A stretch of DNA of 64,000 nt from Neoechinorhynchus agilis (lineage: Eukaryota; Animalia; Acanthocephala): positions 3,879,761 through 3,943,760 of the forward strand of contig CM121341.1 of assembly GCA_051530055.1 (NCBI GenBank), in the 5' to 3' direction. Position numbers and translations under genes: made by a program. The notes below the pieces were generated by a model. It was not told where the DNA came from. It did not search any database and worked only from the letters and a program-made list of their open reading frames with translations. This document shows, piece by piece, positions 3,901-62,765 of the stretch. The first letter of the stretch is position 1. Every line of letters starts with the position of its first letter.

Positions 3901-3929
3901 CAAAACTCTGTTTTTCATTGTTTGCACAA

Positions 3930-7849: not shown

Positions 7850-7970
7850 CGAATCCGGAATCTGGAACGGATTATGGATCCGGAATGTGGATGGCGGATC
7901 CGGAATTTTTATTAGATGATGGATCGGAATGTGGATGATGGATCGGAATGTAAATGATTGATCCGGAGGA
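7850..7970. repeat. Short degenerate minisatellite (GATC(C)GGAATGTGGATG-like)
   Basis: Several imperfect copies of a ~20-24 bp unit. Confidence 0.6.
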
Positions 7971-12000: not shown

Positions 12001-15000
12001 TCCTCTGTAGTTGTTTCACCACCGCCGCCGTCTTCTGTGGTTATTGTCTCCTCTGTAGTTGTTTCACCACCTCCGCCGTTTTCTGTTGTTGTCTCCTCCG
12101 TAGTTGTTTCACCACCTTCGCCGTATTCTGTGGTAGTTGTCTCCTCTGTAGTTGTTTCACCACCGCCGCCGTCTTCTGTGGTTGTTGTCTCCTCTGTAGT
12201 TGTTTCACCACCTCCGCCGTCTTCTGTTGTTGTTGTCTCCTCCGTAGTTGTTTCACCGCCTCCCCCATCTTCTGTAGTTGTTGTCTCTCCGTTGTTGTCT
12301 CTCTGTAGTTGTTTCACCACCGCCGCCGTCTTCTGTGGTTGTTGTCTCCTCTGTAGTTGTTTCACCACCTTCGCCGTCTTCTGTGGTTGTTGTCTCCTCC
12401 GTAGTTGTTTCACCGCCTCCCCCATCTTCTGTGGTTGTTGTCTCCTCTGTAGTTGTTTCACCACCGCCGTCTTCTGTTGTTGTTGTCTCCTCCGTAGTTG
12501 TTTCACCGCCTCCCCCATCTTCTGTAGTTGTTGTCTCTTCCGTAGTTGTCTCACCGCCTCCCCCATCTTCTGTGGTTGTTGTCTCCTCTGTAGTTGTTTC
12601 ACCACCGCCGCCGTCTTCTGTGGTTGTTGTCTCCTCTGTAGTTGTTTCACCACCGCCGTCTTCTGTGGTTGTTGTCTCCTCTGTAGTTGTTTCACCACCT
12701 CCGCCGTCTTCTGTGGTTGTTGTCTCCTCTGTAGTTGTTTCACCACCGCCGCCGTCTTCTGTGGTTGTTGTCTCCTCCGTAGTTGTTTCACCACCGCCGC
12801 CGTCTTCTGTGGTTGTTGTCTCCTCTGTAGTTGTTTCACCACCTCCGCCGTCTTCTGTGGTTGTTGTCTCCTCCGTAGTTGTTTCACCGCCTCCCCCATC
12901 TTCTGTGTTGTTGTCTCCTCTGTAGTTGTTTCACCACCTCGCCGCTTCTGTGGTGTGCTCTGTAGTTGTTTCACCACCGCCGCCGTCTTCTGTGGTTGTT
13001 GTCTCCTCTGTAGTTGTTTCACCACCTCCGCCGTCTTCTGTGGTTGTTGTCTCCTCCGTAGTTGTTTCACCGCCTCCCCCATCTTCTGTAGTTGTTGTCT
13101 CTTCCGTAGTTGTTTCACCACCGCCGCCGTCTTCTGTGGTTGTTGTCTCCTCCGTAGTTGTTTCACCACCTCCGCCGTCTTCTGGTTGTTGTCTCCTCCG
13201 TAGTTGTTTCACCACCGCCGCCGTCTTCTGTGGTTGTTGTCTCCTCTGTAGTTGTTTCACCACCTCCGCCGTCTTCTGTAGTTGTTGTCTCCTCCGTAGT
13301 TGTTTCACCACCGCCGCCGTCTTCTGTGGTTGTTGTCTCCTCTGTAGTTGTTTCACCACCGCCGCCGTCTTCTGTGGTTGTTGTCTCCTCTGTAGTTGTT
13401 TCGCCACCTCCGCCGTCTTCTGTAGTTGTTGTCTCTTCCGTAGTTGTTTCACCACCGCCGCCGTCTTCTGTAGTTGTTGTCTCCTCTGTAGTTGTTTCAC
13501 CACCGCCGCCGTCTTCTGTGGTTGTTGTCTCCTCTGTAGTTGTTTCACCACCTCCGCCGTCTTCTGTGTCTTCTGGTTGTTGTTGTCTCCTCCGTAGTTG
13601 TTTCACCACCTCCGCCGTCTTCTGTAGTTGTTGTCTCTTCCGTAGTTGTTTCACCACCGCCGCCGTCTTCTGTGGTTGTTGTCTCCTCTGTAGTTGTTTC
13701 ACCACCTCCGCCGTCTTCTGTGGTTGTTGTCTCCTCTGTAGTTGTTTCACCACCGCCGCCGTCTTCTGTGGTTGTTGTCTCCTCTGTAGTTGTTTCACCA
13801 CCTCCGCCGTCTTCTGTTGTTGTCTCCTCCGTAGTTGTTTCACCGCCTCCCCCATCTTCTGTGGTTGTTGTCTCCTCCGTAGTTGTTTCACCACCCCGCC
13901 GCTTCTGTGTGTGTCTCCTCTGTAGTTGTTTCACCACCGCCGCCGTCTTCTGTGGTTGTTGTCTCCTCTGTAGTTGTTTCACCACCGCCGCCGTCTTCTG
14001 TGGTTGTTGTCTCCTCTGTAGTTGTTTCACCACCTCCGCCGTCTTGGTTGTTGTCTCCTCTGTAGTTGTTTCGCCACCTCCGCCGTCTTCTGTAGTTGTT
14101 GTCTCCTCCGTAGTTGTTTCACCACCGCCGCCGTCTTCTGTAGTTGTTGTCTCCTCCGTAGTTGTTTCACCACCGCCGCCGTCTTCTGTGGTTGTTGTCT
14201 CCTCCGTAGTTGTTTCCACCGCCGCCGTCTTCTGTAGTGTCATCATTTTCACATCCATCGCCGTCATCATCATCGCATTCATCGTCATCATCATCACATT
14301 CATCGTCGTCATCATCGCCCCCATCACAACCGTCCCCCCCCCCCGTAGTCCCCCCTGTTGTTGTCTCTCGTAGTTGTTTCCCACCCCGCCGTCTTCTGGT
14401 TGTCTCTCGAGTTGTTTCACCACCCCGCCGTCTTCTGTAGTTGTTGTCTCCTCTGTAGTTGTTTCGCCACCTCCGCCGTCTTCTGTAGTTGTTGTCTCTT
14501 CCGTAGTTGTTTCACCACCGCCGCCGTCTTCTGTGGTTGTTGTCTCCTCCGTAGTTGTTTCACCACCGCCGCCGTCTTCTGTAGTGTCATCATTTTCACA
14601 TCCATCGCCGTCATCATCATCGCATTCATCGTCATCATCATCACATTCATCGTCGTCATCATCGCCCCCATCACAACCGTCTTCTGTAGTTGTTGTCTCC
14701 TCTGTAGTTGTTTCGCCACCTCCGCCGTCTTCTGTAGTTGTTGTCTCTTCCGTAGTTGTTTCACCACCGCCGCCGTCTTCTGTGGTTGTTGTCTCCTCGT
14801 AGTTGTTTCCCACCGCCGCCGTCTCTGTTTGTCTCCTCGTAGTTGTTCCCACCCCGCCGTCTTCTGTGTTGTCTCTCCCCCCGCTTCTTGTGTTTCTCCG
14901 TAGTTGTTTCCCCACCGCCGCCGTCTTCTGTGGTTGTTGTCTCCTCAGTTGTTTTGCTGCAAATTGGTGGAATATATTTTAATATATATTGATTGCAGCA

Positions 15001-18830: not shown

Positions 18831-19792
18831 TGTGAAATATTTCATAACAATAAAAGAATCTTTAATCGGGATTATGTTCACCAGCCTCCAAAGAAAGTGA
18901 ATATGTCGATGACAATGGGAAATGTATAATGCAGTGCATTAAGCAAATCGATATCTACGGTTAAATCAAATGGCATTTCCTGTGGTTATCCAAAGAACAG
19001 GAAAACTTGGCGAAAACTGTCGAGGAGAAAAAGAAAGAGTACAAAGCCACTATATTGATTATTCACGTTTTCAGCAGAAAATAACCAAACTGAACTCAAA
19101 ATACGGCGGAAGTCGAGAATTTCGACATTAGCACATCACAAACTGATAGAATGTTGAATAAACCAAATTCAAGAAAAATCATAAAGTCAACGATTTCGAT
19201 AACAAAGAACGAGGAAAAAGAAAGAGAATCAAAGGGAGATCGATGTGTTCTATTGATAATATGGATCGGGACACTTGGAAAATGGATTTGTTGGGGAGGA
19301 GATAAAATGTCATCAAGGTTCTCATCGTGGATGCGTACGCGGTTGAAAGCTTTACTCCTTTCGACGAAAGTCGGCTTGCTCAACCGCATTTTGATCAGTT
19401 TATGGATTGTCGACAGATTTCTCTACCGCATGTTATTTTTATCGATTGTTCTTTATTTAAGCAATTGAAGCGGTTGAAAAACAAATCGATTTATTTTCGA
19501 ACCAATATTTCAGAGTTTTACTCCTAATTTTGGTGAAAATCAGTTTGCTCAACCGCATTTTGATCAGTTCATTGATTGTCGACTGATTTCTCAACCGCAT
19601 GTTATTTTTGTCGATTGTTCTTTATTTAAGCAATAGAAGCGGTTGAAAAACAAATCGATGTATTTCCGAACCAATATTTCAGAGTTTTACTCCTAATTTT
19701 GGTGAAAATCAGTTTGCTCAACCGCATTTTGATGAATTGTCGACTGATTTCTCAACCGCATGTTATTTTTATCGACTGTTCTTTATTTAAGC

Positions 19793-20408
19793 TTCGGGCG
19801 ACACGGTCTCGTCTGCAGAAGGTCAGCAGGAAGGTTTTCACGCCATTCTGAAATCAATAACGTAATTTCTCGGGCGTTGAGAACGGCGAACTTCCCGAAC
19901 ATCCTGGAACCCGCCCACCTCTGCAGACTAGACGGCCGTAGGCCCGATGGAATTTCGGTATTCCCGTGGCGGGAGGGCAAATGCCTTCTCTGGGACGCCA
20001 CGTGTGTGGATACCCTCGCAGCCAGCAACATCCCCTACTCCCTCGAAATCGCCGGTGGTGCCGCCAGTGCAGCGGAAGGGAGGAAGGTACGAAAATATAT
20101 GCAGCTATCGAGGGCTCACTATTTTGTCCCCTTTGGGGTAGAGACGTATGGAGCGCTCGGCAGCTCGGCACTCTCTCTGCTCAAGGATCTCTCGAAGAAA
20201 TTGAGAGAGGCAACCGGAGACTCAAGAGCAGGCTTATTTCTTCGACAAAATATCTCGCTGGCAGTACAACGGGGCAATGCTGCCAGCGTGATGGCGACGG
20301 TCGAGGAAGGACAAAAGCTGGAATTTGGTGGGAGGTGGTGAATGTAAAGAAAAGTAACCAAATAGAAAACAATACTGCCTAAAAAAAAAGTTTCAGGATT
20401 AAAAAAAA
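19793..20408 (+). mobile_element. 5'-truncated CRE-like insertion (zinc knuckle end, REL endonuclease, 3'UTR, poly(A))
   Basis: GRHGLVC..RHSEINNVISRAL..EP..RPDG..WDATCVD..AE.RK.RKY..FVPFGVETYG..QNISLAVQRGNAASV..GGRW*; A10 at 20401-20410; splits the monomer at AAGC^AATTGAAG; no obvious TSD. Confidence 0.9.
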
Positions 20409-21918
20409 AATTGAAGCGGTTGAAAAACAAATCGATTTAATTTCGAACCAATATTTCAGAGTTTTACTCCTAATTTTGGTGAAAATCAGTTTGCTCAACC
20501 GCATTTTGATCAGTTCATTGATTGTCGACTGATTTCTCAACCGCATGTTATTTTTGTCGATTGTTCTTTATTTAAGCAATAGAAGCGGTTGAAAAACAAA
20601 TCGATTTATTTTCGAACCAATATTTCAGAGTTTTACTCCTTTCCACGAAAATCGGTTTGCTCAGCCACATTTTGATCAGTTTATTGATTGTCGACAGATT
20701 TCTCTACCGCATGTTATTTTTATCGATTGTTCTTTATTTAAGCAATTGAAGCGGTTGAAAAACAAATCGATTTATTTTCGAACCAATATTTCAGAGTTTT
20801 ACTCCTAATTTTGGTGAAAATCAGTTTGCTCAGCCGCATTTTGATCAGTTTATTGATTGTCGACTGATTTCTCAACCGCATGTTATTTTTATCGATTGTT
20901 CTTTATTTAAGCAATTGAAGCGGTTGAAAAACAAATCGATTTATTTTCGAACCAATATTTCAGAGTTTTACTCCTAATTTTGGTGAAAATCAGTTTGCTC
21001 AACCGCATTTTGATCAGTTTATTGATTGTCGACTGATTTCTCAACCGCATGTTATTTTTATCGATTGTTCTTTATTTAAGCAATTGAAGCGGTTGAAAAA
21101 CAAATCGATTTATTTTCGAACCAATATTTCAGAGTTTTACTCCTAATTTTGGTGAAAATCAGTTTGCTCAACCGCATTTTGATCAGTTTATTGATTGTCG
21201 ACTGATTTCTCAACCGCATGTTATTTTTATCGATTGTTCTTTATTTAAGCAATTGAAGCGGTTGAAAAACAAATCGATTTATTTTCGAACCAATATTTCA
21301 GAGTTTTACTCCTAATTTTGGTGAAAATCAGTTTGCTCAACCGCATTTTGATCAGTTTATGGATTGTCGACTGATTTCTCAACCGCATGTTATTTTTATC
21401 GATTGTTCTTTATTTAAGCAATTGAAGCGGTTGAAAAACAAATCGATTTATTTTCGAACCAATATTTCAGAGTTTTACTCCTAATTTTGGTGAAAATCGG
21501 TTTGCTCAACCGCATTTTGATCAGTTTATGGATTGTCGACAGATTTCTCTACCGCATGTTATTTTTATCGATTGTTCTTTATTTAAGCAATTGAAGCGGT
21601 TGAAAAACAAATCGATTTATTTTCGAACCAATATTTCAGAGTTTTACTCCTAATTTTGGTGAAAATCAGTTTGCTCAACCGCATTTTGATCAGTTCATTG
21701 ATTGTCGACTGATTTCTCAACCGCATGTTATTTTTGTCGATTGTTCTTTATTTAAGCAATAGAAGCGGTTGAAAAACAAATCGATGTATTTCCGAACCAA
21801 TATTTCAGAGTTTTACTCCTAATTTTGGTGAAAATCAGTTTGCTCAACCGCATTTTGATGAATTGTCGACTGATTTCTCAACCGCATGTTATTTTTATCG
21901 ACTGTTCTTTATTTAAGC

Positions 21919-22534
21919 TTCGGGCGACACGGTCTCGTCTGCAGAAGGTCAGCAGGAAGGTTTTCACGCCATTCTGAAATCAATAACGTAATTTCTCGGG
22001 CGTTGAGAACGGCGAACTTCCCGAACATCCTGGAACCCGCCCACCTCTGCAGACTAGACGGCCGTAGGCCCGATGGAATTTCGGTCTTCCCGTGGCGGGA
22101 GGGCAAATGCCTTCTCTGGGACGCCACGTGTGTGGATACCCTCGCAGCCAGCAACATCCCCTACTCCCTCGAAATCGCCGGTGGTGCCGCCAGTGCAGCG
22201 GAAGGGAGGAAGGTACGAAAATATATGCAGCTATCGAGGGCTCACTATTTTGTCCCCTTTGGGGTAGAGACGTATGGAGCGCTCGGCAGCTCGGCACTCT
22301 CTCTGCTCAAGGATCTCTCGAAGAAATTGAGAGAGGCAACCGGAGACTCAAGAGCAGGCTTATTTCTTCGACAAAATATCTCGCTGGCAGTACAACGGGG
22401 CAATGCTGCCAGCGTGATGGCGACGGTCGAGGAAGGACAAAAGCTGGAATTTGGTGGGAGGTGGTGAATGTAAAGAAAAGTAACCAAATAGAAAACAATA
22501 CTGCCTAAAAAAAAAGTTTCAGGATTAAAAAAAA
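21919..22534 (+). mobile_element. Second near-identical copy of the CRE-like 3' insertion
   Basis: Offset of exactly 2126 bp from the first copy, same junctions, one substitution noticed (GGTA vs GGTC). Confidence 0.9.
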
Positions 22535-22977
22535 AATTGAAGCGGTTGAAAAACAAATCGATTTAATTTCGAACCAATATTTCAGAGTTTTACCCTAATT
22601 TTGGTGAAAATCGGTTTGCTCAGCCGCATTTTGATGGATTGTCGACTGATTTCTCTACCGCATGTTATTTTTATCGATTACTAGATTTTTTATTTTGGAC
22701 CGATATTTCAGAGTTTTACTCCTTTGCGCTGAATGCGAACCGATTCAAGGGATTACTCACCTTTTCCTTTCACACAAAATTTTATTTATAAAAAGGTTCT
22801 ACCGTGTTCGAAAACGTAAGTTTCTCTATAAACTCGGGCGCTAAAAACGTGAGCGGACGAATGTAATATCGAGTTCAGGTAAAAGAAGGTCGGCCAGTGG
22901 CCTTTTGCAAGCCACGAGGAATTAAGGGCTTTTCCGTTCCGTGTTTTAGAGGTATCTACTGCCCGTTTGAGTTGCGA

Positions 22978-24090
22978 ATGGACGATCTATTTAAGAAGCT
23001 CGACCAACTAAGCAATTCATCGGATGGATCTGAAGAGAATGAAGAGATGATCAAAGATTGCGGTTCGCCGTTATCGGCAGACGAAGAATCCACTCGAAAT
23101 AATGACGTAAACGCTGAGCCTCTGAGACCTGCCGAGGAAGGTGGAAGTTCAGATAGTAGTTCGTTTGGTTCGTTGGTTGCACCGGAGACTGAACTCAGTT
23201 CAAATAGCGACAATGAGTCTCAAATTAATTCGAATCCTGAACTTACGAAGCAGGATGTTGATCCGAATAATTCTGAGTGCCATCCTCAAGCTCCAGTTCT
23301 ACGAATTCAAGTTCCAAAGAAGGAACGACTGGAGGCTAAAGCTGAATACACTCGATTACCCGGCTATATTCGGATAGCCAGCGAGATATTCGATGAAGAA
23401 ACCTTTGAAAATGATATCGGAGATTTGCCCGAAGACATCGAGATGCATCATTTGGTGGCTACTTCAGTTCTGACTAAGAATACGGTCCGGTGGCGACGAG
23501 CGGAAAATGGTAACCTAGAGAGCAATGCAAAGATTCTCACTTGGGACAATGGAACTCGATCATTGATGATAGGCGATGTTTTATTTGATATAAAACCGGC
23601 CATTAATCCTAGCAATAATCGAATCTTTGTGAACATGGACGACTACCATCTTGGTTGTACTATTCCATCGACTAGAATTCTGCTGAACGCTGTCAAAATG
23701 GATTATAATACCATGGCTCAGGTTAATCAATCCCTTCGGGAAATCCGTGAGGGCAAAAAGAAGGAGGTCGAACCATTGATCGATGATACACGGGATCCGG
23801 AGATAGTTCGTTTGGAGCAAATAAGAAAGACCGAGGAAATTTTGAAAGCCGAGGAAAAACGACGAAATGCTCAATTGAGGAGAAGGGAAGTTGCTGCAAG
23901 GAGGGCGAATAAAATGGCAGTGGAGTTTCTTGAGGAAGACAGTAATGACGAATTAAAGAAAGATTGGGAAGGCAGTGAAAACGATACGGATTTGTTCGAG
24001 GGCACGAATGCCAATGCTTCTGATGTCGATGAATCAGATAAGAAGCGTGGCGGGCGTGTGGTTAGAATCGAAGAGAGCGACGAGGATTGA
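22978..24090 (+). CDS. LEO1: RNA polymerase-associated protein LEO1 (Paf1 complex), single exon
   Basis: Acidic N-terminus (MDDLF..); Leo1 core RLPGYIRI..FDEETFE..NTVRWRR..ESNAKILTWDNGTRSLMIGD..RDPE..EE.LKA; acidic tail. ATG 22978 preferred over the track's GTG at 22897. Confidence 0.9.
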   Translation: MDDLFKKLDQLSNSSDGSEENEEMIKDCGSPLSADEESTRNNDVNAEPLRPAEEGGSSDSSSFGSLVAPETELSSNSDNESQINSNPELTKQDVDPNNSECHPQAPVLRIQVPKKERLEAKAEYTRLPGYIRIASEIFDEETFENDIGDLPEDIEMHHLVATSVLTKNTVRWRRAENGNLESNAKILTWDNGTRSLMIGDVLFDIKPAINPSNNRIFVNMDDYHLGCTIPSTRILLNAVKMDYNTMAQVNQSLREIREGKKKEVEPLIDDTRDPEIVRLEQIRKTEEILKAEEKRRNAQLRRREVAARRANKMAVEFLEEDSNDELKKDWEGSENDTDLFEGTNANASDVDESDKKRGGRVVRIEESDED

Positions 24091-30947: not shown

Positions 30948-31745
30948 ATGGAATTTCAGACTTTGCTCGAGATGGCGGATAGTGCTTCTAAGATGATAGC
31001 TGAACTCAAAAAGAAAGTTGGAGCTTTAGAATCAGACGAGCATCGACGAGTAGCAGTTGCCGAGCATAAATATCTAAGTGCTCAATGCTCCCGGTTGGTT
31101 CAGGAGCTGAAGGACATTGAAGCGAATGTGGCAAACCGGATTTCTGATATTTCAAAGAAAGTACAAGAGAAAGATATTGAACAGTCGGCGTCATTACTTG
31201 GACCAAAAAAATCATCTAAAGTTCAGAAGCCACCATCTCCCGTTGACATTTCTCGATTTGACCTTCGTATTGGCCACATCGAGAAGGTGGAGCGGCATCC
31301 AAACGCCGATAAACTGTATGTTAGTCTCATTAATGTTGGTGAAAGTAGCCCGAGGACTGTTTGTAGCGGACTCGTCGGTCACATTGAACAGTCTGACCTG
31401 GAGAATTCTATGGCAATCGTGCTTTGCAATCTTAAGGCTGCAAAGATCCGCGGAATTAAAAGTGAAGCGATGATAATGTGTGCCAACGAAACTTCAGCTT
31501 CTGGCGAATATACTGTAAAGCTTTTAAAAGTGGACGGTTCAACAAATGCCGGCGATAGAGTCACTTGCGATGGGTTTGAGAATGAATGCTACGATAAAAG
31601 TTTACAAAGTCAAGTGGTTTTTCAAATTTTGAAGGATTTAAAGACTAACGAACGATGTGAAGGGTGCTATAAGGGACACATTTTGAGGGTCAAGGATGTG
31701 GGAGTTGTAGTTGCCGAAGGAATGCCTCTGGCCAATATAAAATAA
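30948..31745 (+). CDS. AIMP1: Aminoacyl-tRNA synthetase complex-interacting protein 1 (p43/EMAP II), single exon
   Basis: N-terminal coiled coil; tRNA-binding OB domain VDISRFDLRIGHI..HPNADKLYV..VG..RTVCSGLV..LCNLK..RGIKSEAMIMCA..GDRV. Confidence 0.92.
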   Translation: MEFQTLLEMADSASKMIAELKKKVGALESDEHRRVAVAEHKYLSAQCSRLVQELKDIEANVANRISDISKKVQEKDIEQSASLLGPKKSSKVQKPPSPVDISRFDLRIGHIEKVERHPNADKLYVSLINVGESSPRTVCSGLVGHIEQSDLENSMAIVLCNLKAAKIRGIKSEAMIMCANETSASGEYTVKLLKVDGSTNAGDRVTCDGFENECYDKSLQSQVVFQILKDLKTNERCEGCYKGHILRVKDVGVVVAEGMPLANIK

Positions 31746-32644: not shown

Positions 32645-34749
32645 ATGCACCAAACTCTTGAACGAACCAGAAGTCCGCCATTTGAGCATTTCGATCATTC
32701 TTATTTATTTCCAGAGGTATGAACCGCTTGTTGAATAATTCTGAAGACATTTTCATCCGTTATTTATAGACAATTCAACAAATTCAAAAGATAGAAGATT
32801 TCCCAAACTTATCCATCAACAGAAAACCAATTGAACCATCAGCGCGATCACGGCAAGAAATTGTTCCAACATTGCAGGGAGCGATGCAATTGCCAAAACG
32901 AAATTGCCCTGTACGGCCTCCGGGTTTTGAGCGTATTTTTACAGGAGAAATGCAATCGATATTTAACAAGCAATCGACAGAATGGGTTTTGGAGCCACCT
33001 CCCGGATTTGAAGGCATTTCAAACGTAGAAATGCAACCGATTTTTAACAGACCAACCACAGAATTAGTTTTGGAACCACCTCCCGGACTTGAACGTATTG
33101 CAAACGGAGAAATGCAATCGATTTTTAACAGGTCTACCAGAAAATTAGTTTTGGAACCACCCCCTGGATTTGAAAGTATTTCAAACGGAGAAATGAAATC
33201 GATATTTAACAGGTCTACCCGAAAATTAGTTTTGGAACCACCCCCTGGATTTGAAAGTATTTCAAACGGAGAAATGAAATCGATATTTAACCGGCCAACC
33301 ACCGAATTAGTTTTGGAACCACCTCCCGGACTTGAAAGTATTTCAAGCGGAGAATTGCAATCGATATTTAACAGGCAATCTACAGAATCAGTTTTGGAAC
33401 CACCTCCCGGACTTGAACGTATTGCAAACGGAGAAATGCAATCCATTTTTAATAGGCAATCCACAGAATGGGTTTTGGAACAACCTCCCGGACTTGAAAG
33501 TATTTCAAACGGAGAATTGCAATCGATATTTAACAGGCAATCCACAGAATTATTTTTGGAACCACCTCCCGGACTTGAACGTATTGCAAACGGAGAAATG
33601 CAATCGATTTTTAACAGGCCTACCGCAAAATTAGTTTTGGAACCACCCCCAGGATTTGAAAGTATTTCGAGCGCAGAAATGCAATCGATATTTAACAGGC
33701 AATCCACAGAATTAGTTTTGGAACCACCTCCCGGATTTGAAAGTATTTCAAACGGAGAAATGAAATCGATATTTAACAGGCCAAGCACAGAATTAGTTTT
33801 GGAACCTCCTCCCGGATTTGAAAGTATTTCAAACGGAGAAATGAAATCGATAATTAACAGGCAATCCGCAGAATGGGTTTTGGAACCACCTCCGGGGTTT
33901 GAACTTATTTTAAACGGAGAAATGCAATCGATATTTAACAAGCCAAGCACAGAATTAGTTTGGGAACCACCTCCCGGATTTGAAAGTATTTCAAACGGAG
34001 AAATGAAATCGATATTTAACAGGCCAACCACCGAATTAATTTTGGAACCACCTCCCAGATTTGAAAGTATTCCAAACGGAGAAATGCAATCGATATTTAA
34101 CAGGCCAACCACGGAATTAGTTTTTGAGTCACCCCCTGGATTTCAGCGTATTTCAAACGGAGAAATGCAATCGATATTTAACAGGCCAACCACAAAATTA
34201 GTTTTGGAACAACCTCCGGGGTTTGAACTTATTTTAAACGGAGAAAAGCAATCGATATTTAACAGGCCAAGCACAGAATTAGTTTTGAGACCACCTCCCG
34301 GATTTGAGCGTATTTTAAACGGAGAAATGCAATCGACATCTAACAGACCATCCACAGAATTAGTTTTGAGACCACCTCCCGGATTTGAGCGTATTTCAAA
34401 CGGAGAAATGCAATCGACATCTAACAGATCATCCACAGAATTAGTTTTGAGACCACCTCCCGGATTTGAGCGTATTTTAAACAGAGAAACGCAATCGATT
34501 TTTAACAGACCAACCTCAGAATTAATTTTGGAACCACCTCCCGGATTTGAGCGTATTTCAAACGGAGAAATGCAATCGATATCTAACAGACCATCCACAG
34601 AATTAGTTTTGAGACCACCTCCGGGACCTGAGCACATTCATCCTAAGTGGCGGCCACCAAAGCCCATATCACTTCTCCTTGACGGTCGCGATTCAGAATT
34701 TAATGGATGCTTACTGCTCCATTCGCAGTATCGTCAGTTCGCCTCCTGA
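32645..34749 (+). CDS. Orphan protein with 22 tandem 27-aa PPPG(F/L) repeats; proposed exons 32645-32716 and 32770-34749
   Basis: 81-bp units with no indels or stops across ~1.75 kb despite many substitutions. A 53-bp intron (GTATGA..TTTATAG, 32717-32769) removes an in-frame TAG and joins in phase 0. Further upstream exons are possible. Confidence 0.65.
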
Positions 34750-39245: not shown

Positions 39246-41601
39246 AATAAGTCTGAACTTATCAAAATTCGAGTAGTATTATGAACAAAGTGGTGAAACC
39301 TTCATAGCTTATTTGAACGCGTTTCCATTTGAGTCCAAGATACTTTATTCGAAATTTATCCAATTTTTTCAATTGAGCCTTACAAAGTCTTTTGAAAAGT
39401 CACATTAACAGGAAGTTTTTGTTTGTAATCATGCGTAGACCTATTCATGTATTTTTGGTAGTTATGGTGTGTTGCGCATAAAGGAGAGAGATTTAGCACT
39501 CCCCTTGAGAAGGACGGAAGCGGGGTCTCCGCGCATAAACGCATGGCACAAGTGTTCGAGCGTCAGAGTTGTTCGTTCACGCCAACAATTTTTTCGGTCT
39601 TAAATTCTTAAGGATATACGTTTTTTCTTCATTAAATCAATAAACAACGGCTTCCTAAATTGTAACAAAGTTCACAGAGGTTTTTTACTGGCGCGAAGAA
39701 ATTAAAATGATTTTATTTTAAAATTCGATATTTTATATATTTATCTTAAATCGCATACACTCATGGCATCACTGCATATCTTCTTTTGAGCCTCTTTGCC
39801 AACTCACACACTTCGGAGGCGCTCAGCGGCACTCGAAGGGACAGGGCCAACCCACTTTTGGGGCCGATGGGCGACCTCAAACCTGTCTGGTTCGCTGTCA
39901 GTATTGTTATTCTCGATTAATAAGGAAATCAGCAGAACAGACATTATGCAATGTAGGGAACGATTTGCCAAAATCCAAATGACAATCACACTGGCAGAAA
40001 AGTTCAATGTAAAGCATTGCAGAAGCCAACTCAACGAATAGTAAGTTATACACAACGTGTGTATGAAGAAATCCGACGAGGCAGACGAAATATTGGGAAT
40101 TAATCAATCTCTATTCTTCTCATCACCAAAAAATGAACAACTTCTTTACAGTAAACCGGTTATCGATTTTTTGGAGCTTATTCGAGTTGAATGGAGATGC
40201 CAGTATGAAAGTAAAATAAATGTGTTATGTTTCATCGGGAAAAACTGCGATTACCTTATTTGACGGGAATCCGCGACGTGATCGTGTAATCTTTATCTTG
40301 AAAAAGTTCGTATCTGATTGATTCGAATGCAAGTTGACGTTCGGAATTTAGTTGTGTGCCTGGCTGATTGGCTTATTGTTATTTCGAGAGATCGAGCTTT
40401 GTTGTAGAATTCATCTAAACCGACGTCGTGGCTCTCTAGAATTCTCTGGTGAGTAAATAAAATTGTGACAATCGCTTCTTGTTTTTCAGAACTGAGCGAG
40501 CTTGAAAAGCATATTCTTTACTGAGTACTCCTAATACTTTTATGTACTGGGCCACGGTCTTTGGGATGAGGTTCAATCGTCCCATTGGAGGCGCCGTGTT
40601 TGTTTTACTTGTCTTTTTCTTCGATTTGAAGTAAAATCTGATCCTCAATTTCTTTGATAGCTTCAGGAGAGGATAGACCTTTAAGGTTGTGCGCAATAAA
40701 GGCTGCCTTGTTTGTTGTTTCAAGTAGAATCACTTCCTAACAAAAGACGTATATTTTTACTTATTAAACAATCTACAAAGTATCATTCCAAAAGGAAGTT
40801 GTCTTGGTTATCAATATGCCGTCTCCTTTGGTCAGCGTATGGCTGTTATCTTGGATAACTTTCCTATTTGATCAGATTATCGATATAACTGACCGGGTTG
40901 CATGAACCGCCAAGATCAGTTCCTTCCGCAGAGAAAATAGGTTGAAGCCTTTTGGGCGGTCGTACACGGACCTGCGCGACAACGATAGGTTTAGAAAATA
41001 TATTAAAAATACTCCTTTTTCGACTTCTTATTTAACCATTGAATTTTATTTTGTTGTTGGCCCTTTTTTGGTGGCGTTTAGAAAGTATTTTCATTGCCTT
41101 TTCTTAAGGTTTATGGACTTTTTTTCGGATTAAACCCTATTCCGAACCACAAAACGTTATAATGAATAGAAAACATATCCGTCAAATGGACTTAATCAGC
41201 ATTAACTTTGATGGGAGCCTTGAAGAGGATTGTGTAAGCTTGTCCTCCTCAACGTAAGCTCATTCGGCATGTTAATCTAAGCTGTTCACTATTTCATTTT
41301 CGAAATTGCATTTTTTGTATTCAATATTCAGCATTTGTAGTGTATCGGCAAAGTGCTGTTTACTGATCGAGTTAATCAATGATTCATAAATTATAATCCT
41401 CGATGGGTAAACTATGAAGATAAAGTAGCTGATACTTTGTGCCATCGCCGGTAAAAACTTTTGTTCAATTTTTTAGCAAACACACCATTTTGTGAATCGC
41501 ATTCGTAACTCCGGCGGCCTACCTCTTGCGGCTTCTTGAGTATTGGTAGTGGCTTGCATAATGAGATTCGTGTTTGAAGATTGAATTGTTCATATAAGTT
41601 C

Positions 41602-47969: not shown

Positions 47970-48405
47970 CAACGACCAGAACGAGCCTTCCTCTTTTAAA
48001 CAATCTCAATCCAATTAAATATGAAACTTCATTTTAAAACAAAGTCGAATTAATCGAATTTCAGCGTTTTATAAGAGTCATCAAGGGAAAATCCTTCGGG
48101 GGATGGTACAAGTCTAGGAACCACCTCTGAAATAGGAAAAATTCCCCCGAACAAAACCTTTTTACGCGACCAGAACTAGGCTTCCTCTTTCAAACAATCT
48201 CAATCCAATCAAGTGTGAAATTTCATTTTAAAACAAAGTCGAATTAAGCGAATTTCAGCGGTTTATAAGAATCATCAAGGGAAAATCCTTCGGGGGATGG
48301 TACAAGTCTCGGAACCACCTCTGAAATAGGAAAAATCCCCGCGAGTACCCGAATAAAACTTTTTTATACGACCAGAACGAGGCTTCCTCTTTCAAAATAT
48401 CTCTC
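47970..48405. repeat. ~196-200 bp tandem repeat (2.2 copies); related sequence at 54385-54500 and 42630
   Basis: CGACCAGAAC at ~47973, ~48168 and ~48369; AAAATCCTTCGGG shared with 42636 and 54389. Confidence 0.8.
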
Positions 48406-49245: not shown

Positions 49246-49341
49246 ATTAATAGAACATCGCGATAGAAAAGAGGAAACGCAGCGAGTGTGGCCGCCACCA
49301 CTGAGGGAAGATCGATGCCTCTTCTTCGTGGACGGTGGTGA
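49246..49341 (+). mobile_element. CRE-like REL C-terminal remnant heading the 218-bp array
   Basis: 49270-49341 translates RGNAASVAATTEGRSMPLLRGRW*, preceded by NIAI in a shifted frame. Confidence 0.8.
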
Positions 49342-51425
49342 TTGTTGAAACGTTTTCTTGTGTGTTTGTCAATTGCAGAATTTAATAAATGGGATGCCCG
49401 TATAAAAAAATTAAACAAAATGATGATCTTCAATGGAAAAATGCACAAATCGGTTTACTGGGATGTTTTCCCCCGTCGTTACCGGAATAAACGATACCAA
49501 AAAATTATTAGCAATTTTTTGTTCTTAGAGCGATGCCTCTTCTTCGTGGACGGTGGTGATTGTTGAAACGTTTTCTTGTGTGTTTGTCAATTGCAGAATT
49601 TAATAAATGGGTTGCCCGTATAAAAAAATTAAACAAAATGATGATCTTCAATGGAAAAATGCACAAATCGGTTTACTGGGATGTTTTCCCCCGTCGTTAC
49701 CGGAATAAACGATACCTAAAAATTATTAGCAATTTTTTGTTCTTAGAGCGATGCCTCTTCTTCGTGGACGGTGGTGATTGTTGAAACGTTTTGTTGTGTG
49801 TTTGTCAATTGCAGAATTTAATAAATGGGTTGCCCGTATAAAAAAATTAAACAAAATGATGATCTTAATGGAAAAATTCACAAATCGGTTTACTGGGATG
49901 TTTTCCCCCGTCGTTACCGGAATAAACGATACCAAAAAATTATTAGCAATTTTTTGTTCTTAGAGCGATGCCTCTTCTTCGTGGACGGTGGTGATTGTTG
50001 AAACGTTTTCTTGTGTGTTTGTCAATTGCAGAATTTAATAAATGGGTTGCCCGTATAAAAAAATTAAACAAAATGATGATCTTCAATGGAAAAATTCACA
50101 AATCGGTTTACTGGGATGTTTTCCCCCGTCGTTACCGGAATAAACGATACCAAAAAATTATTAGCAATTTTTTGTTCTTAGAGCGATGCCTCTTCTTCGT
50201 GGACGGTGGTGATTGTTGAAACGTTTTGTTGTGTGTTTGTCAATTGCAGAATTTAATAAATGGGATGCCCGTATAAAAAAATTAAACAAAATGATGATCT
50301 TCAATGGAAAAATTCACAAATCGGTTTACTGGGATGTTTTCCCCCGTCGTTACCGGAATAAACGATACCAAAAAATTATTAGCAATTTTTTGTTCTTAGA
50401 GCGATGCCTCTTCTTCGTGGACGGTGGTGATTGTTGAAACGTTTTGTTGTGTGTTTGTCAATTGCAGAATTTAATAAATGGGTTGCCCGTATAAAAAATT
50501 AAACAAAATGATGATCTTCAATGGAAAAATTCACAAATCGGTTTACTGGGATGTTTTCCCCGTCGTTACAATACTGGGATGTTTCCCCCGTCGTTACCGG
50601 AATAAACGATACCAAAAATTATGCAATTTTTTGTTCTTAGAGCGATGCCTCTTCTTCGTGGACGGTGGTGATTGTTGAAACGTTTTCTTGTGTGTTTGTC
50701 AATTGCAGAATTTAATAAATGGGATGCCCGTATAAAAAAATTAAACAAAATGATGATCTTCAATGGAAAAATGCACAAATCGGTTTACTGGGATGTTTTC
50801 CCCCGTCGTTACCGGAATAAACGATACCAAAAAATTATTAGCAATTTGAATAAACGATACCAAAAAATTATTAGCAATTTTTTGTTCTTAGAGCGATGCC
50901 TCTTCTTCGTGGACGGTGGTGATTGTTGAAACGTTTTCTTGTGTGTTTGTCAATTGCAGAATTTAATAAATGGGATGCCCGTATAAAAAAATTAAACAAA
51001 ATGATGATCTTCAATGGAAAAATGCACAAATCGGTTTACTGGGATGTTTTCCCCCCGTCGTTACCGGAATAAACGATACCAAAAAATTATTAGCAATTTT
51101 TTGTTCTTAGAGCGATGCCTCTTCTTCGTGGACGGTGGTGATTGTTGAAACGTTTTGTTGTGTGTTTGTCAATTGCAGAATTTAATAAATGGGTTGCCCG
51201 TATAAAAAAATTAAACAAAATGATGATCTTCAATGGAAAAATTCACAAATCGGTTTACTGGGATGTTTTCCCCCGTCGTTACCGGAATAAACGATACCAA
51301 AAAATTATTAGCAATTTTTTGTTCTTAGAGCGATGCCTCTTCTTCGTGGACGGTGGTGATTGTTGAAACGTTTTGTTGTGTGTTTGTCAATTGCAGAATT
51401 TAATAAATGGGTTGCCCGTTAAAAA
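49313..51425. repeat. 218-bp tandem array (10 starts) containing a CRE-like 3' end
   Basis: CGATGCCTC at 49313, 49531, 49749, 49966, 50184, 50402, 50643, 50894, 51113 and 51331. Two units have small internal duplications (241 and 251 bp). Confidence 0.97.
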
Positions 51426-51847: not shown

Positions 51848-52758
51848 ATGGTATTGGTATCCTCTAGTCGTATGTTCGCAATCGCTATCTTATTTTTAAT
51901 TTATGGTGGTGGAGGTAAGCGTTCGTCTCGTTTTTAATCAATCAAAATTTCGTTTAGCTTAAATCGTAACAGTTTTTAAAGGGTACACTTAAAACGTACT
52001 CAGTTCAATTCTTTTAGTTTCTCCATCTATAATTATGTCGTCGGTTTAATCCAATTTTTATTGAAGAAAAACACAAGAACTTTTAATTTATTTGCCTAAA
52101 ACTCATCCGACGATTAGAGGAGAACACCTTCCGAATAAAACTACCGTTTACCTTAAAGCACAAATTTTTCATCATTTAGGATATTTTCAATTTCTCCATC
52201 TTTAATCACGAATAAACGTTTATCGTCGTCGGTTAAATCAGCTTTGGAAATTTTAGTTTATTTGCCTAAAACTCATCCGACGATTAGAGGAGAACATTTC
52301 TCGTGTGGGTTTTAATTTTTAGCAAAGTTTTGTGATTATTTGGTATCTGGTAGACTTTTTTACGAGACAGATGAATGTTATTTATCGGTCCATTTTTAGG
52401 TTTGAACGGCAACAAACAATCTGGCGTTGAAGCACTTCAATGCTACGAATGTAACGATGATGGCCCATGTGTCGAATTTGTTAATGAAGGTCAAAACATT
52501 GGAAAGTGTACTACTCAAGTTGCATGTCGGAAAATCTCAGCTACGGTCAACGGGCGCAGATATGTGACAAGGCAATGCGCGAAGACGACTGATGGACAAG
52601 ACGGGTGCTATCGATCTCCTGGAGCTGTTCTTACAGACACTTGCACTTGCTCTTCGGAACTTTGCAATTCGTCTTTAGGACTACTTCAACGTTCTTTGAT
52701 TGCTAATGCCGTGTTCATATTCGGTAGTCTTTTTGTGTTGCTTTTTTGTCTTCAGTAG
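51848..52758 (+). CDS. GPI-anchored Ly6/uPAR three-finger protein (quiver/sleepless-like); exons 51848-51914 and 52400-52758
   Basis: Signal-peptide exon with phase-1 GTAAGC donor and TTTTTAG acceptor; LQCYEC..10 Cys..CTCSSELCN; hydrophobic C-terminal tail. Confidence 0.88.
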
Positions 52759-57239: not shown

Positions 57240-60200
57240 ATGCAACCGAGAATTTTACTACTTTCGCTCCTCGTGACCGCCAGTAGCTGCCTCAATGGAA
57301 TGTACGACAATTCACACGTCCACGAACTCGACTCGGGGAACTTTTATCAATTAGTTAAATCGAAAAACTCGTCATTGTGGCTTATCAAGTTTTATGCTCA
57401 TTGGTGCGGACATTGTATCGAATTTTCAAGTTTATACAAACGATTTGCACAAAGAATTTCGGGTAAGATAAAACTGAATCTAAAGACGGTTTCTGATTTC
57501 AATAACGGTTTAACGCATTTTCAAATATTTTATGCCATGTTATTTCGTTAGTAAATCATCCTCCTTTCGAAGTAAACAAATCCAATTTATTATCAGGTTA
57601 AAAGTCAATTATGAGTTCACTAAATCGAAATGGTTACCCCAATTGATTAGTTTGTGCTCTCATTTTAATTGAAATATTTCGATCTTGATCACAACCATTC
57701 GCTCTGTCTGACTCTAGGCTGGAAACCAATTGTTAATGTTGGCGCCGTGGATTGTGCAGAGGAATACAACGCCGCATTATGTAGACAATATCATGTGGAG
57801 CTCTATCCGACGTTTCGCGTAAGTTTAACAAAGCGATTTCACACAAAATTTTCTCATGAATTTCATCTTTTTGACTATATACGGGGTTGTCATTTAAAAG
57901 CTCTTTTTATCGAAATAATAAGCAATTTTGAATCCGTACATTTAATTGATCTTCGATTTATGTTCTATTGATTTTTCTAGACTTTAAATAAGCTTCATTC
58001 ATTATCGGAAATTCAAAATTTACGTTGTCGTTTGCCTTTTTTTCGTACAATCTTAGTTGATATTTATTGCTGGACATTTAGACGATTAATAAACGAGGAA
58101 TTGCTGAATCATTCCGTTTTGGTCTACACTCAAAAACAGACGAAATAAAATGCAATCTACTAAGCGCTTTAAATGGCGTTGATCAACAATATTCATCCAT
58201 GTTTGCTCCTATCAGGTAATAAGTTTATTTTAATTTGTAATAACGTTCAACGGCCGAAAATCTTTATAGTCCAGAAACATATTTGCGTTTATCGGCACAT
58301 TATAAAACATTAATAATTGTGATTGACGGCGAACGTGACTGCCTAGGAAAAATGGTATACACTGCTTTTTCCTTCACTGTTCGAAAAACGTTTTCTATCT
58401 AGATGATCATGGATTTTCGGCCAGCACGATCGAATACTCCGATTTTCCGAATGTCTTTGTTGACAGCGAAGCAACTAAGAATTGTTAGCGACGATTTCCT
58501 GAACACTGATCTTCCGATTGTTGTCCATATTCACGAAAAAAACCCGACTAAAATCGAACCAAGGCTTGTGTTCTTAAATGGAGATAGAACCAATACGCTT
58601 TATGAGAAGTTTGAAGCCGGTATTGAGCATCAACTTCATGTTGGAGTTCATGAAACCATATCCACCACACCACATCCACAAAAAAAACGAGCAAGGGTAT
58701 TGAAAAAATCAAGGTATTTACAGGTGGATATGTGGGTTTCGAAACCTTTTCCTAATATAAGAGACTTTATCGCAATGTAAACTAAGGATAACCGGGATTA
58801 TTGTTTAGAAGTATTCACCCGGTAAATAATTTTATTCGATTAAAAACGTTTTTAACCTCTTCGCGTTCATCATCAGTTTCCTAGTTAGTAATGGACGGTT
58901 CGCAGAACGTTTTTTATCGAAAAAATTATTTACCGCGGGTGTAGACTTCCAAACAATAATTCTCAAATCATATTGCCCAGTACCTCTAGTCTCACATATC
59001 GACAATTTAAAGATAACCGTTTATTTCCTGCTCATCCGGTGCACCCATCTAAAAATTAAATCTTCCACACTAATATCCAATCAGGACTAATTATACTCAT
59101 TATGTCGGGTTACTCTTACCAAAATTTTCAGACAAGTTTTAAGGGTGACTTTTTTACAGTCGATTGAGGTTACCAATCTTGTCTTATTAGCTAAATACCA
59201 AGCTTTTCAGCACTTTATTTCGGCTTACTCTAACCAAAATTATCAGACAAGCTTTTAGGGTGACTTTTTTACAATCGATTGAGGCTACCAATCTTGTCTT
59301 ATTAGCTAAATACCAAGATTCTCAGCACTTTATTTCGGGTTACTCTAACCAAAATTATCAGACAAGTTTTAAGGGTTACTTTTTTTACAATCGATTAAGG
59401 TTACCAATCTTGTATTATTAGCTAAATACCAAGCTTTTCAGCACTTTATTTCGGGTTACTCCAACCAAAATTATCTTGCAAGTTTTAAGGGTTACTTTTT
59501 ACAATCGATTGAGGTTACCAATCTTGTCTTATTAGCTAAATACCAAGCTTTTCAGCACTTTATTTCGGGTTACTCCAACCAAAATTATCTTTCAAGTTTT
59601 AAGGGTTACTTTTTTACAATCGATTAAGGTTACCAATCTTGTCTTATTAGCTAAATACCAAGCTTTTCAGCACTTTATTTCGGGTTACTCTAACCAAAAT
59701 TATCTTTCAAGTTTTAAGGGTGACTTTTTTACAATCGATTGAGGTTACCAATCTTGTCTTATTAGCTAAATACCAAGCTTTTCAGCACTTTATTTCGGGT
59801 TACTCTAACCAAAATTATCAGACAAGCTTTTAGGGTGACTTTTTTACAATCGATTGAGGTTACCAATCTTGTCTTGTTAGCTAAATACCAAGCTTTTCAG
59901 CACTTTATTTCGGGTTACTCTAACCAAAATTATCAGACAAGTTTTAAGGGTGACTTTTTTACAATCGATTGAGGTTACCAATCTTGTCTTATTAGCTAAA
60001 TACCAAGCTTTTCAGACTTTATTTCGGGTTACTCTAACCAAAATTATCTTTCAAGTTTTAAGGGTTACTTTTTTACAATCGATTGAGGTTACCAATCTTG
60101 TCTTATTAGCTAAATACCAAGCTTTTCAGCACTTTATTTCGGGTTACTCTAACCAAAATTATCTTACAAGTTTTAAGGGTGACTTTTTTACAATCGATTG

Positions 60201-62765
60201 AGGTTACCAATCTTGTCTTATTAGCTAAATACCAAGCTTCTCAGCACTTTATTTCGGGTTACTCTAACCAAAATTATCTTTCAAGTTTTAAGGGTTACTT
60301 TTTTTACAATCGATTAAGGTTACCAATCTTGTCTTATTAGCTAAATACCAAGCTTTTCAGCACTTTATTTCGGGTTACTCCAACCAAAATTATCTTACAA
60401 GTTTTAAGGGTGACTTTTTTACAATCGATTGAGGTTACCAATCTTGTCTTATTAGCTAAATACCAAGCTTCTCAGCACTTTATTTCGGGTTACTCTAACC
60501 AAAATTATCTCACAAGTTTTAAGGGTGACTTTTTTACAATCGATTGAGGTTACCAATCTTGTCTTATTAGCTAAATACCAAGCTTTTCAGCACTTTATTT
60601 CGGGTTACTCTAACCAAAATTATCAGACAAGCTTTTAGGGTGACTTTTTTACAATCGATTGAGGTTACCAATCTTGTCTTGTTAGCTAAATACCAAGCTT
60701 TTCAGCACTTTATTTCGGGTTACTCTAACCAAAATTATCAGACAAGTTTTAAGGGTGACTTTTTTACAATCGATTGAGGTTACCAATCTTGTCTTGTTAG
60801 CTAAATACCAAGCTTCTCAGCACTTTATTTCGGGTTACTCTAACCAAAATTATCAGACAAGTTTTAAGGGTGACTTTTTTACAATCGATTGAGGTTACCA
60901 ATCTTGTCTTATTAGCTAAATACCAAGCTTTTCAGCACTTTATTTCGGGTTACTCTAACCAAAATTATCTGACAAGTTTTAAGGGTGACTTTTTTACAAT
61001 CGATTGAGGTTACCAATCTTGTCTTATTAGCTAAATACCAAGCTTTTCAGCACTTTATTTCGGGTTACTCCAACCAAAATTATCTTACAAGTTTTAAGGG
61101 TTACTTTTTTACAATCGATTGAGGTTACCAATCTTGTCTTATTAGCTAAATACCAAGCTTTTCAGCACTTTATTTCGGGTTACTCTAACCAAAATTATCT
61201 TTCAAGTTTTAAGGGTTACTTTTTACAATCGATTAAGGTTACCAATCTTGTCTTATTAGCTAAATACCAAGCTTTTCAGCACTTTATTTCGGGTTACTCT
61301 AACCAAAATTATCTTTCAAGTTTTAAGGGTTACTTTTTTACAATCGATTAAGGTTACCAATCTTGTCTTATTAGCTAAATACCAAGTTTTTCAGCAAACA
61401 CAAAAAAGTTTTTATAATATTGACGCAATGTCATTTTATACAGGGCAGTGAACATGGTCGACCTCGAGTCCACTTTATCTTATATGTTTAAATTTGAAGT
61501 CGCTTGTCGTACCTATCTCAATACGGAAACAGTCGCTGTCCTACGGCATTGGTTGTGGACATTGATGAAGGTATTTGAGACTTTTATTGTCAGAAAGCGG
61601 CTCAATTGTTTCTAAAAAAAGTATTTTCCTGGGCGAAGACCTGTACTTAACCAACTCGGATTTTTGGATATAAAACTCATGGAAAAGAAGCTTCTTGGAA
61701 TGGATGGTCGTGAATTTAAAAAGCATGCAAAGAGTACCGTCCTGGAATACCACCAACACGAGATCTATACGCGATACTTTCCTCCTCTTCGTTGGATCAA
61801 TTGCCTTGGATCAAAGCCAATGTATAGAGGGTACCCGTGTGGAGTATGGACACTATTTCACACCCTTTCCGTTCGATTGGCTAACCAATTCACTAAAGAA
61901 AGTTGTAAGTCGTATTCCTTTGATTGCAGATATAACCACAACTTTCGTTTCCCATGTAGTTCAAGATAAATCGGAAGCAGTTAAAATGTTCAATTCTATA
62001 AGAAACTACATGTCTCACTTTTTCGGGTGCGAAGAATGCGTTCAGCACTTTTTGGAAGGGACACAACAATATATTGGTCGCATTGAGAATGGAGACGATC
62101 TTGTATTGATTTTATGGAAGGGTTAGTATTGTATTCAAAGTGGTTTTCTCGTAATTCTCGGCTTAAAAAAGGGCATAACCGAGCCAATGGATTTTTAAGT
62201 GGAGCATTAACAGAAGATCCTTACGCACCTAAATGCCAGTTTCCAAATCGAATCGATTGTCCTCGATGCCGAGATTCTAAAGGTCAATGGATTGAATCTG
62301 AAGTACTGAAGTTTCTCAAATACCATTATTCAAACATCGATTCCAGTGCTCTAGACAACGACCGAACTGTGATTAAGCAACTAAGAATGAAAGGAATTGT
62401 AACGCGTAGTCCGTGGATCGATCTCAACCTACAACAGAGTAAGAAAAACTCAAAAGTGTCTAATGGTCAGAAGCACTCTTCCGCTAACCGTTTGCGTATT
62501 CGGTCTGAGCGTTGTCTTGGTAGTCAATTGACTTCCAATTCAACTGATCAGTCCTCTCGTGAATACGCTGATGGTAGGAAGAGTGCCACTTATGATACGA
62601 AGACATACGCCAATCAAAGAGGATTTTCCTCTTACTAACGCCTTCGGCTATTTTATGGTAAAATTTCAATTCATTTGCATAGTGGCGTGTGCGGTGATTT
62701 TCTTTTCCTATCTTTTTAAACTGAACCTTAGAAGACGTGCTAGATTGTTCAAAACTACACTTTGA
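57240..62765 (+). CDS. QSOX: Quiescin sulfhydryl oxidase; exons 57240-57462, 57718-57818, 58082-58215, 58270-58354, 58403-58713, 61444-61570, 61622-61904, 61960-62121, 62172 onward (3' end ambiguous: stop 62638 or 62765)
   Basis: Signal peptide; Trx1 FYAHWCGHC..VGAVDCAEE..YPTFR; Trx2; HRR MVDLES; Erv YRGYPCGVWTLFH..FFGCEECVQHF..HNRAN..EDP..QFP..CPRC. All listed junctions are GT-AG and phase-compatible. Confidence 0.93.
58790..59010. repeat. Intronic copy of the 39020-39245 foldback family, opposite orientation
   Basis: Shares AGAAGT..CACCC(G)CGGTAAAT..TTCGATTAAA arms. Minus strand: CTGATGA(58876)-T-GAAC-gcgaagag-GTT-aaaaacgtt. Confidence 0.75.
59108..61395. repeat. 115-bp satellite (~20 copies) inside QSOX intron 5
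   Basis: (G/A)AGGTTACCAATC at 59511, 59626, 59741 and 59856 (period 115); lies within intron 58714-61443. Confidence 0.97.

Follow-up and report, generated by a model that had tools for sequence, protein, structure and literature searches.

We analysed a 64-kb window of the Neoechinorhynchus agilis genome (the whole stretch of 64,000 nucleotides, at about 3,879,761-3,943,760 on contig CM121341.1 of assembly GCA_051530055.1, to which all coordinates refer unless another locus is named) and found in it a tandem array in which the 3' tail of a non-LTR retrotransposon (one that lacks long terminal repeats, LTRs) with a restriction-like endonuclease (RLE, also REL) alternates with a spacer unrelated to the element. 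The array occupies positions 49314-51425 on the plus strand and holds 10 copies of the element tail, which we call b, and nine copies of the spacer, which we call c, in ~2.1 kb. The original prediction for this DNA had read it as a satellite born from amplification of the junction between the element and its flank, or from repeated insertion into a repeated target. We give about an even chance to a different history, in which two nearby 5'-truncated insertions of the same non-site-specific R2-group element were followed by unequal exchange.

The 218-bp array that had been predicted is real. Tandem Repeats Finder (TRF) reported a period of 218 bp with 98% matches over 49309-50569, and periods of 219 and 435 bp extend the array to 51425. 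An exact 28-nt anchor, GATGCCTCTTCTTCGTGGACGGTGGTGA, is found 10 times, at 49314, 49532, 49750, 49967, 50185, 50403, 50644, 50895, 51114 and 51332, which gives spacings of 218, 218, 217, 218, 218, 241, 251, 219 and 218 bp. The spacings of 241 and 251 bp reflect internal duplications, of 28 bp in unit 6 (50544-50597) and of 33 bp in unit 7 (50815-50880). When the units were compared by anchor spacing, MAFFT alignment and a variant table, the monomer identity was ~98%.

The layout of the array is x-a-b-(c-b)9-d, where x and d are the outer flanks and a is extra element sequence found in the first unit only. Its parts are listed here, with an element copy at locus L003 (chromosome CM121343.1) for comparison.

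49258-49313, plus strand: a, ~55 bases of extra element sequence in unit 1 only, a remnant of the last conserved motif of the open reading frame (ORF), …AI[frameshift]KRGNAASVAATTEGRS
49314-49410, plus strand: first b, the 8 last codons (MPLLRGRW), TGA, a 69-nt 3' untranslated region (UTR) with AATAAA, and A7
49411-49526, plus strand: first c, one of the nine copies in the array of a spacer with no relation to the element, here 116 nt long (TTAAAC…GTTCTT)
49527-49531, plus strand: AGAGC, present at each internal c-b junction; L003 has GGGGAGAGCGATGCC in its copy, and unit 1 has AGATC
51332-51425, plus strand: last b, the element part alone with no spacer behind it, with the tail GTTAAAAA and the full end …GCCCGTTAAAAA at 51425

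The array does begin inside the last codons of the element, as had been predicted, but the DNA homology to other copies starts at ~49258 in the alignment with the L003 copy and not at 49246. We found no further element homology upstream of 49258, and the left edge of a is the 5' truncation point of the putative first founder copy. A stop codon at 49264-49266 lies just upstream of the array's element tail, and therefore no long ORF is attached to the array. Thus, the parent that had been described as still attached amounts to no more than a 5'-truncated, dead stub (~155 bp), upstream of which lie a stop and unique DNA. The frame assigned to the ORF end was correct: unit 1 translates as …TSR, a stop, KRGNAASVAATTEGRSMPLLRGRW and a second stop, with TGA at 49339-49341. 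Across 61 aligned homologues, the Q-R-G-N motif shows almost no variation. Among 188 retrieved proteins, this motif lies most often ~23 residues before the C-terminus, the same distance as at the array. On these sequence grounds, we take the RGNAAS motif of the stub to be genuine and the stub to be a true ORF end.

Counted from GATGCC, b is 97 nt long. A length of 102 nt, with AGAGC as the start, is more likely for the element part, since RAMPLLRGRW and a stop are what the internal units encode, exactly like the L003 copy; AGAGC is probably still element sequence and would be the 5' truncation point of the second founder copy. The spacer measures 116-121 nt. The composition predicted for the unit, namely the last 8 codons, a UTR with AATAAA, A7 and non-element DNA, is therefore correct except for its proportions, the spacer having been put at ~125 bp. 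Likewise, the array ends after a final A-run at 51425, as predicted, and the unrelated flank d begins at 51426. The array is bounded by element borders on both sides: its left edge is a 5' truncation and its right edge an A-run. We found no degenerate monomers in the array flanks, no c-c junction or c-only unit at either edge, and no partial c within the array.

The first and last copies of b are not alike. They differ in 5' extent (the ~49258 stub versus the AGAGC start), in the bases before GATGCC (AGATC versus AGAGC, the latter matching L003), in their tails (GTATA7 versus GTTA5) and at two variable sites within b, where the first copy has C at position 44 and A at position 81 and the last copy has G and T. 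The internal units all carry the tail GTATAAAAAAA, unlike the GTTAAAAA of the last b. Across the array, substitutions are confined to three sites, which occur in five combinations and of which one lies in c. The states at the two b sites in the internal units are CA, CT, GT, CT, GA, GT, CA, CA and GT. Such mosaic internal units are what two founders that differ slightly are expected to yield through unequal exchange or conversion. Several of the remaining differences between units are homopolymer indels.

In the history that we favour, two 5'-truncated copies in the same orientation would have landed ~116 bp apart. Copy 1 (a-b1) would have been ~155 bp long with the tail GTATA7, and copy 2 (b2) ~100 bp long, starting at AGAGC and ending in the tail GTTA5, so that the founder would have read x-a-b1-c-b2-d. 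The two ~97-bp direct repeats in this founder could then misalign, and unequal exchange and/or gene conversion would multiply the 218-bp unit (b+c) until there were nine and a half copies, while keeping the units homogeneous. Since both b-c and b-d adjacencies are present, and since x and d are unlike c, the founder needed two copies of b, barring a deletion that ended exactly at the element 3' end. The family is locally abundant, with seven element fragments in the 64-kb window, and often 5'-truncated, which makes close pairs of this kind plausible. No function is implied for the array.

Two further copies of the same subfamily end were available for comparison.

2008-2120, minus strand: non-amplified copy of the subfamily 3' end, …TTEGSAMPLLRGRW and a stop, UTR, and A7 at 2014-2008
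12711-12813 of L003, chromosome CM121343.1: subfamily end with 84% identity to the array over 103 bp (E = 7e-28)

The match to the minus-strand copy, which the original prediction had proposed, is significant. The Smith-Waterman score is 114 versus 18.2 ± 2.3 for shuffles, and blastn gives 85% identity over 95 bp (2026-2120) with E = 2e-23. This copy closes a degraded element fragment at ~2600-2008. As had also been anticipated, a longer element of the subfamily ends in the same way: the L003 copy, which is near full length (it covers residues ~214-1102 of a 1,110-aa relative), shares the C-terminus, ending …QRGNVASVVVTTAGRAMPLLRGRW and a stop, and the first ~35 nt of its UTR match the array. 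Each of the three subfamily copies closes with a short A-run, 57-72 nt after the stop. Among the 188 retrieved homologues we found no intact member of the PLLRGRW subfamily, none of them ending in GRW. In the window, 2008-3660 on the minus strand holds two degraded, overlapping fragments of this RLE element in succession (~3660-2780 and 2600-2008), both covering the same ORF region. Upstream of them, the sequence at 3556-3927 resembles what we take to be an LTR-retrotransposon integrase, of which Pfam gave no confirmation.

Given that unrelated DNA follows the A-run in both the 2008 copy and the L003 copy, c is not element sequence. We searched for it in ~128 kb of N. agilis DNA, comprising the window and three other loci rich in the element (L001, L003 and L004), and found no second copy in the remaining 62 kb of the window or in the 66 kb of the three loci. 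It resembles neither the DNA behind the A-run of the 2008 and L003 copies, nor the sequence further upstream in the near-full-length copy of L003, nor either flank of the array; the similarity between d and c is at chance level, with a score of 19-20 versus shuffles averaging 18-19. The spacer holds AATAAA-N7-A6, followed by 22 more nt, and a T6 run. Those 22 nt mean that c does not end as a simple polyadenylated cDNA would. A lenient alignment of the L003 copy had run into c, as if c were part of the element 3'UTR, and we rejected this assignment when stricter scoring gave a chance-level result (20 versus 18.9 ± 2.6). A small-RNA gene or target in c was likewise rejected, as no Rfam family reached its gathering score and the best model, a C/D small nucleolar RNA, scored 24 bits against a 45-bit cut-off. 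ARAGORN found no tRNA in c, there was no spliced-leader RNA or other RNA family, and the RNA fold of the monomer gave no signal (z = +0.83). A 34-mer from c had 0 matches in JGI metagenomes. The 218-bp unit is unrelated to the other arrays of the window and to a 215-bp array in L001. The simplest reading is that c is local unique DNA. As for the label of satellite, what we observed is one 2.1-kb array, with no other c in the ~128 kb.

Beyond the TGA, the element frame meets no stop in the UTR or spacer before it reaches the following unit (49342-51366), which gives a 74-aa ORF per monomer. For these ORFs we found no homologue or database record, exact-protein look-ups gave no match, and a protein search with the C-terminal peptide and the monomer translation returned nothing at E <= 10. 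They are probably due to chance.

The class of the element was assessed from the window and its relatives. A reverse transcriptase (RT) domain, RVT_1, is found in homologues at E values of 2e-13 to 5e-22 and weakly in the window at 3153-3647, and a YLDD motif is readable in the window sequence. In the window and in the relatives, the RT is followed by CxC…H…C, RH, RPDG, WD.T and K..KY. The C-terminal domain encoded at 19796-20338 had no match in Pfam or PDB sequence searches. Its AlphaFold model has a predicted local distance difference test score (pLDDT) of 91.5, and in a Foldseek search of the PDB the top seven matches, at E 1.6e-6 to 4e-5, are all R2 proteins, their sources being zebra finch, turtle and silkworm; after them come other PD-(D/E)XK nucleases. 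P50-D51, D67 and K97 of this domain are invariant or nearly so in the alignment of 61 homologues. The endonuclease type named in the original prediction is thus borne out by the structural model. Full-length relatives are ~1,000-1,150 aa long and have a single ORF. A Pfam scan of eight full-length homologues gave PHD, RFX, C2H2 and OTU domains in addition to RVT_1, and Exo_endo_phos, the apurinic-type endonuclease (APE) domain, was absent from all eight. The family is very large in animals, where 15,961 cluster representatives match at E <= 0.001. From the modelled fold and the domain order, the element is identified as an R2-group, RLE-bearing non-LTR retrotransposon. The R2 group comprises the clades CRE, NeSL, R2, R4 and HERO (PMC3636483, PMC4640811), and none of the named protein matches carries a clade name.

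Six 3' junctions of the family were compared, and all of them differ: A5-TTGAAATG, A7-TTAAACAA, A7-TCAGTCAT, A6-TATCTTTA, A9-ATTGAAGC and A7-TTATTAAT. Given six unrelated junctions, the family is not site-specific. We saw at these junctions neither the specificity of CRE-type elements for spliced-leader genes nor the accompanying target-site duplication. Non-site-specific insertion has been reported for HERO-type elements, unlike CRE or NeSL (PMC4640811, PMC3636483).

Several observations weigh against two insertions followed by exchange. Neither an empty site nor a dimer allele has been seen in the one assembly (GCA_051530055.1), and, short of a local preference for insertion, it would take a coincidence to place two independent insertions 116 bp apart. 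Since c has a single founder, the one shared variant within it indicates that new mutations spread through the array, so that the variants in b need not date from two founders. The assembly was built from error-prone long reads with a repeat-graph assembler (the genome paper is silent on satellites; PMC12690905), and therefore differences in A-run length carry little weight. In addition, we found no convincing target-site duplication at either presumed insertion, the longest shared strings being 7-8 bp, a length reached by ~10% of shuffles. Target-site duplications neither support nor exclude any of the mechanisms considered here.

A single chimeric insertion is a doubtful but serious contender. 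Here, target-primed reverse transcription would copy b2, jump to a template that gives c, and then copy a second element RNA (b1 and a), after which unequal exchange would expand a-b-c-b. End-to-end template jumping is a known property of the R2 reverse transcriptase. By its C-terminal domain the family belongs to the R2 group, the inner junctions are without target-site duplications, as this route would have it, and the same a-b-(c-b)n-d layout results, with both borders at element ends. However, c does not bring an A-run up to b, its AATAAA-A6 being followed by 22 nt; we found no source for c; and, as two or more sites distinguish the b copies, two different element RNAs would be required. 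We regard as distinctly doubtful that the repeat predates the locus or is itself mobile, either as a 5'-truncated retrocopy of a source with a (b-c)n-b 3' region or as a c+b non-autonomous element that inserts head to tail at A-runs. A tail borrowed from a partner long interspersed nuclear element is the standard design of short interspersed nuclear elements (SINEs) and short internally deleted elements (SIDEs). Every unit boundary can be read as an A-run followed by TTAAAC, the array holds no partial c, and the block opens with a 5' truncation and closes with an A-run, as a single retrocopy does. Set against this, no c turned up in the 62 kb of the window or the 66 kb of three loci rich in element copies, c is unlike the upstream part of the L003 copy, has no tRNA or Rfam match and holds a T6 run, public collections hold no protein or ORF record of the unit, and a family that lacks target specificity is unlikely to insert nine times in a row at a single A-tail. 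Of the features of a SINE or SIDE, we found no dispersed copy with its own flanks and no RNA polymerase III head (tRNA or Rfam), a negative that is weak given the small sample. In its most specific form, which we consider very improbable, the 218-bp unit would be a non-autonomous retroelement mobilised by the R2-group element and inserting preferentially at the previous A-tail, so that the array grows by retrotransposition; if so, the array would be a self-assembling satellite.

Plain tandem duplication of one element/flank junction (x-a-b-c-…) through AGA(T/G)C microhomology, with a later deletion that removes the last c exactly at the A-run, is improbable in our estimation. The monomers are ~98% identical, and AGATC before the first b resembles the AGAGC at the end of c and could be a microhomology breakpoint. 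AGAGC is element sequence in L003, though, and so more simply element-derived, and d bears no similarity to c (19-20 versus 18-19 for shuffles). Junction amplification in the form originally put forward would leave spacer, not element tail, at the right end, and so an extra deletion with its left edge exactly at the element 3' end is needed. The other proposal of the original prediction, insertion into a repeated target, would mean that nine 5'-truncated copies inserted independently into a 116-bp tandem repeat that was already there, which is barely credible: RLE elements do often target repeats (PMC4640811), and a copy of a sister subfamily sits inside a 169-bp satellite in this window, but the nine truncation points and tails are all identical, which repeated insertion would not give, and the flanks are free of spacer, with no c-c junction or c-only unit at either edge. 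Moreover, six family 3' junctions share no target, and the sister subfamily is found outside the satellite too. It is highly improbable that the copy number or the whole array was made by the long-read assembler. Error-prone long reads and a repeat-graph assembler were indeed used (PMC12690905), and several unit differences are homopolymer indels. A 2.1-kb array is nevertheless shorter than typical long reads, and structured shared substitutions together with two distinct internal duplications are rare in collapse or expansion artefacts.

The sister-subfamily copy just mentioned offers a second association between an element of this family and a tandem repeat.

19796-20408, plus strand: sister-subfamily copy, 613 bp, 5'-truncated, …QRGNAASVMATVEEGQKLEFGGRW and a stop, UTR and A9, inside a monomer of a 169-bp satellite

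This subfamily ends in …GGRW and a stop, and the borders of the insertion in the satellite are …tttatttaagc and attgaagcgg…. The element and the adjoining satellite are repeated 2126 bp downstream (21922-22534), with one mismatch in ~1.1 kb, within the region 19376-22700. The same satellite family (75-83% identity) adjoins an element fragment on CM121342.1 (L001 9340-9786). Since another copy of the sister subfamily sits in non-satellite DNA, the case at 19796-20408 is one of co-amplification and not of targeting. Unequal exchange involving the element family is thus active in the region, ~30 kb from the array. In L001, at 3168-10957, an RLE fragment is present as an inverted duplicate (3168-3803 minus, 10322-10957 plus); between its two copies lie an array with a 215/430-bp period, at 3931-7357, and a patch of 169-bp satellite.

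Three more tandem arrays lie in the window, at 4684-6764 (431 bp x 4.9), 47972-48403 (194 bp x 2.2) and 59100-61396 (115 bp x 20), none of them similar to the 218-bp unit, and young arrays are unusually numerous in this part of the chromosome. A very long, coding-like repeat of 48/96/144 bp occupies 9280-14872, with ~100 copies of the 48-bp period. Both strands of it have open frames, the longest of 821 aa, and its product may be a highly repetitive protein of low complexity. An 81-bp (27-codon) repeat in 21 copies (32917-34626) lies within a 625-aa open frame (32872-34749, plus strand), which is probably a repeat-containing protein-coding exon. A full-length U6atac minor-spliceosome small nuclear RNA (snRNA) gene at 39469-39593 on the plus strand (Rfam RF00619, 60 bits versus a 33-bit cut-off) suggests that N. 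agilis retains the minor spliceosome. Among host genes, we observed a Leo1-domain ORF at 22897-24090, a tRNA-binding-domain ORF (265 aa, about 30948-31745) identical to an annotated N. agilis protein (GCA_051530055.1, CM121341.1 at 3,910,708-3,911,505), and, ~950 bp downstream of the array, a QVR/Ly6-type ORF at 52375-52758 for which no database record was found.

The closest parallels to the array come from Drosophila, where tail-to-internal dimers with distinct truncations have been read as double insertions that are able to expand (McGurk & Barbash 2018, PMC5932611). The classic case is the X-linked R1 array of D. melanogaster, with its identical 33-nt ribosomal DNA spacers (PMC5932611). 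The N. agilis array has the features of such double insertions, namely tail-to-internal junctions in the same orientation, distinct 5' truncations, and expansion beyond a dimer with exchange. Like the R1 array and the Drosophila dimers of transposable elements (TEs), it joins a non-LTR tail to a 5'-truncated next copy across an identical short spacer, with distinct founder truncations and ~10 copies. Unlike the R1 array, its repeated element part is only ~100 bp, its unit is satellite-sized (218 bp), its spacer is ~116 bp of unique DNA instead of a duplicated specific target, and its host is an acanthocephalan. In alternating an R2-group fragment with non-element DNA, the array also resembles the Utopia/U2 snRNA arrays of Phytophthora and YURE in U2-derived satellites (PMC4640811). 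Those elements are target-specific and their partner is a recognisable U2 gene (PMC4640811), whereas the N. agilis spacer matches no RNA family and the element family lacks target specificity.

The element itself resembles the HERO clade and other non-site-specific R2-group elements (PMC4640811, PMC3636483), which have a single ORF of ~1,100 aa, variable N-terminal DNA-binding domains, an RT, a CCHC motif and a PD-(D/E)XK nuclease. It shares with HERO the lack of an APE domain, the lack of site specificity and a wide distribution in animals, a likeness of architecture and insertion behaviour. It also shares the order of RT then RLE, and the R2-group architecture, with the CRE clade (CRE1/2, SLACS, CZAR), to which the original prediction had likened it. 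CRE elements, however, insert in spliced-leader genes and make target-site duplications (PMC3636483), in contrast to the six unrelated junctions, with no clear duplication, of N. agilis. As in TE-derived satellites (PMC9659126, PMC12628747) and in LTR-derived arrays of plants (PMC7004042), TE sequence has been recruited into a tandem repeat; most of those satellites start from repeats already present inside the TE, whereas the N. agilis unit spans an element end and foreign DNA.

The locus is thus a young TE-derived tandem array of a well-described kind and calls for no new mechanism. Its value lies in an early stage of repeat birth with a legible history, in which the founder ends would be kept at the borders and the units would be mosaics of both founders, and in showing an RLE family that is abundant and not site-specific in N. 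agilis. To our knowledge, the repeats of the phylum Acanthocephala are essentially undescribed. If our preferred reading of two insertions and unequal exchange is correct, the route worked out in Drosophila would extend to an R2-group element in this phylum.

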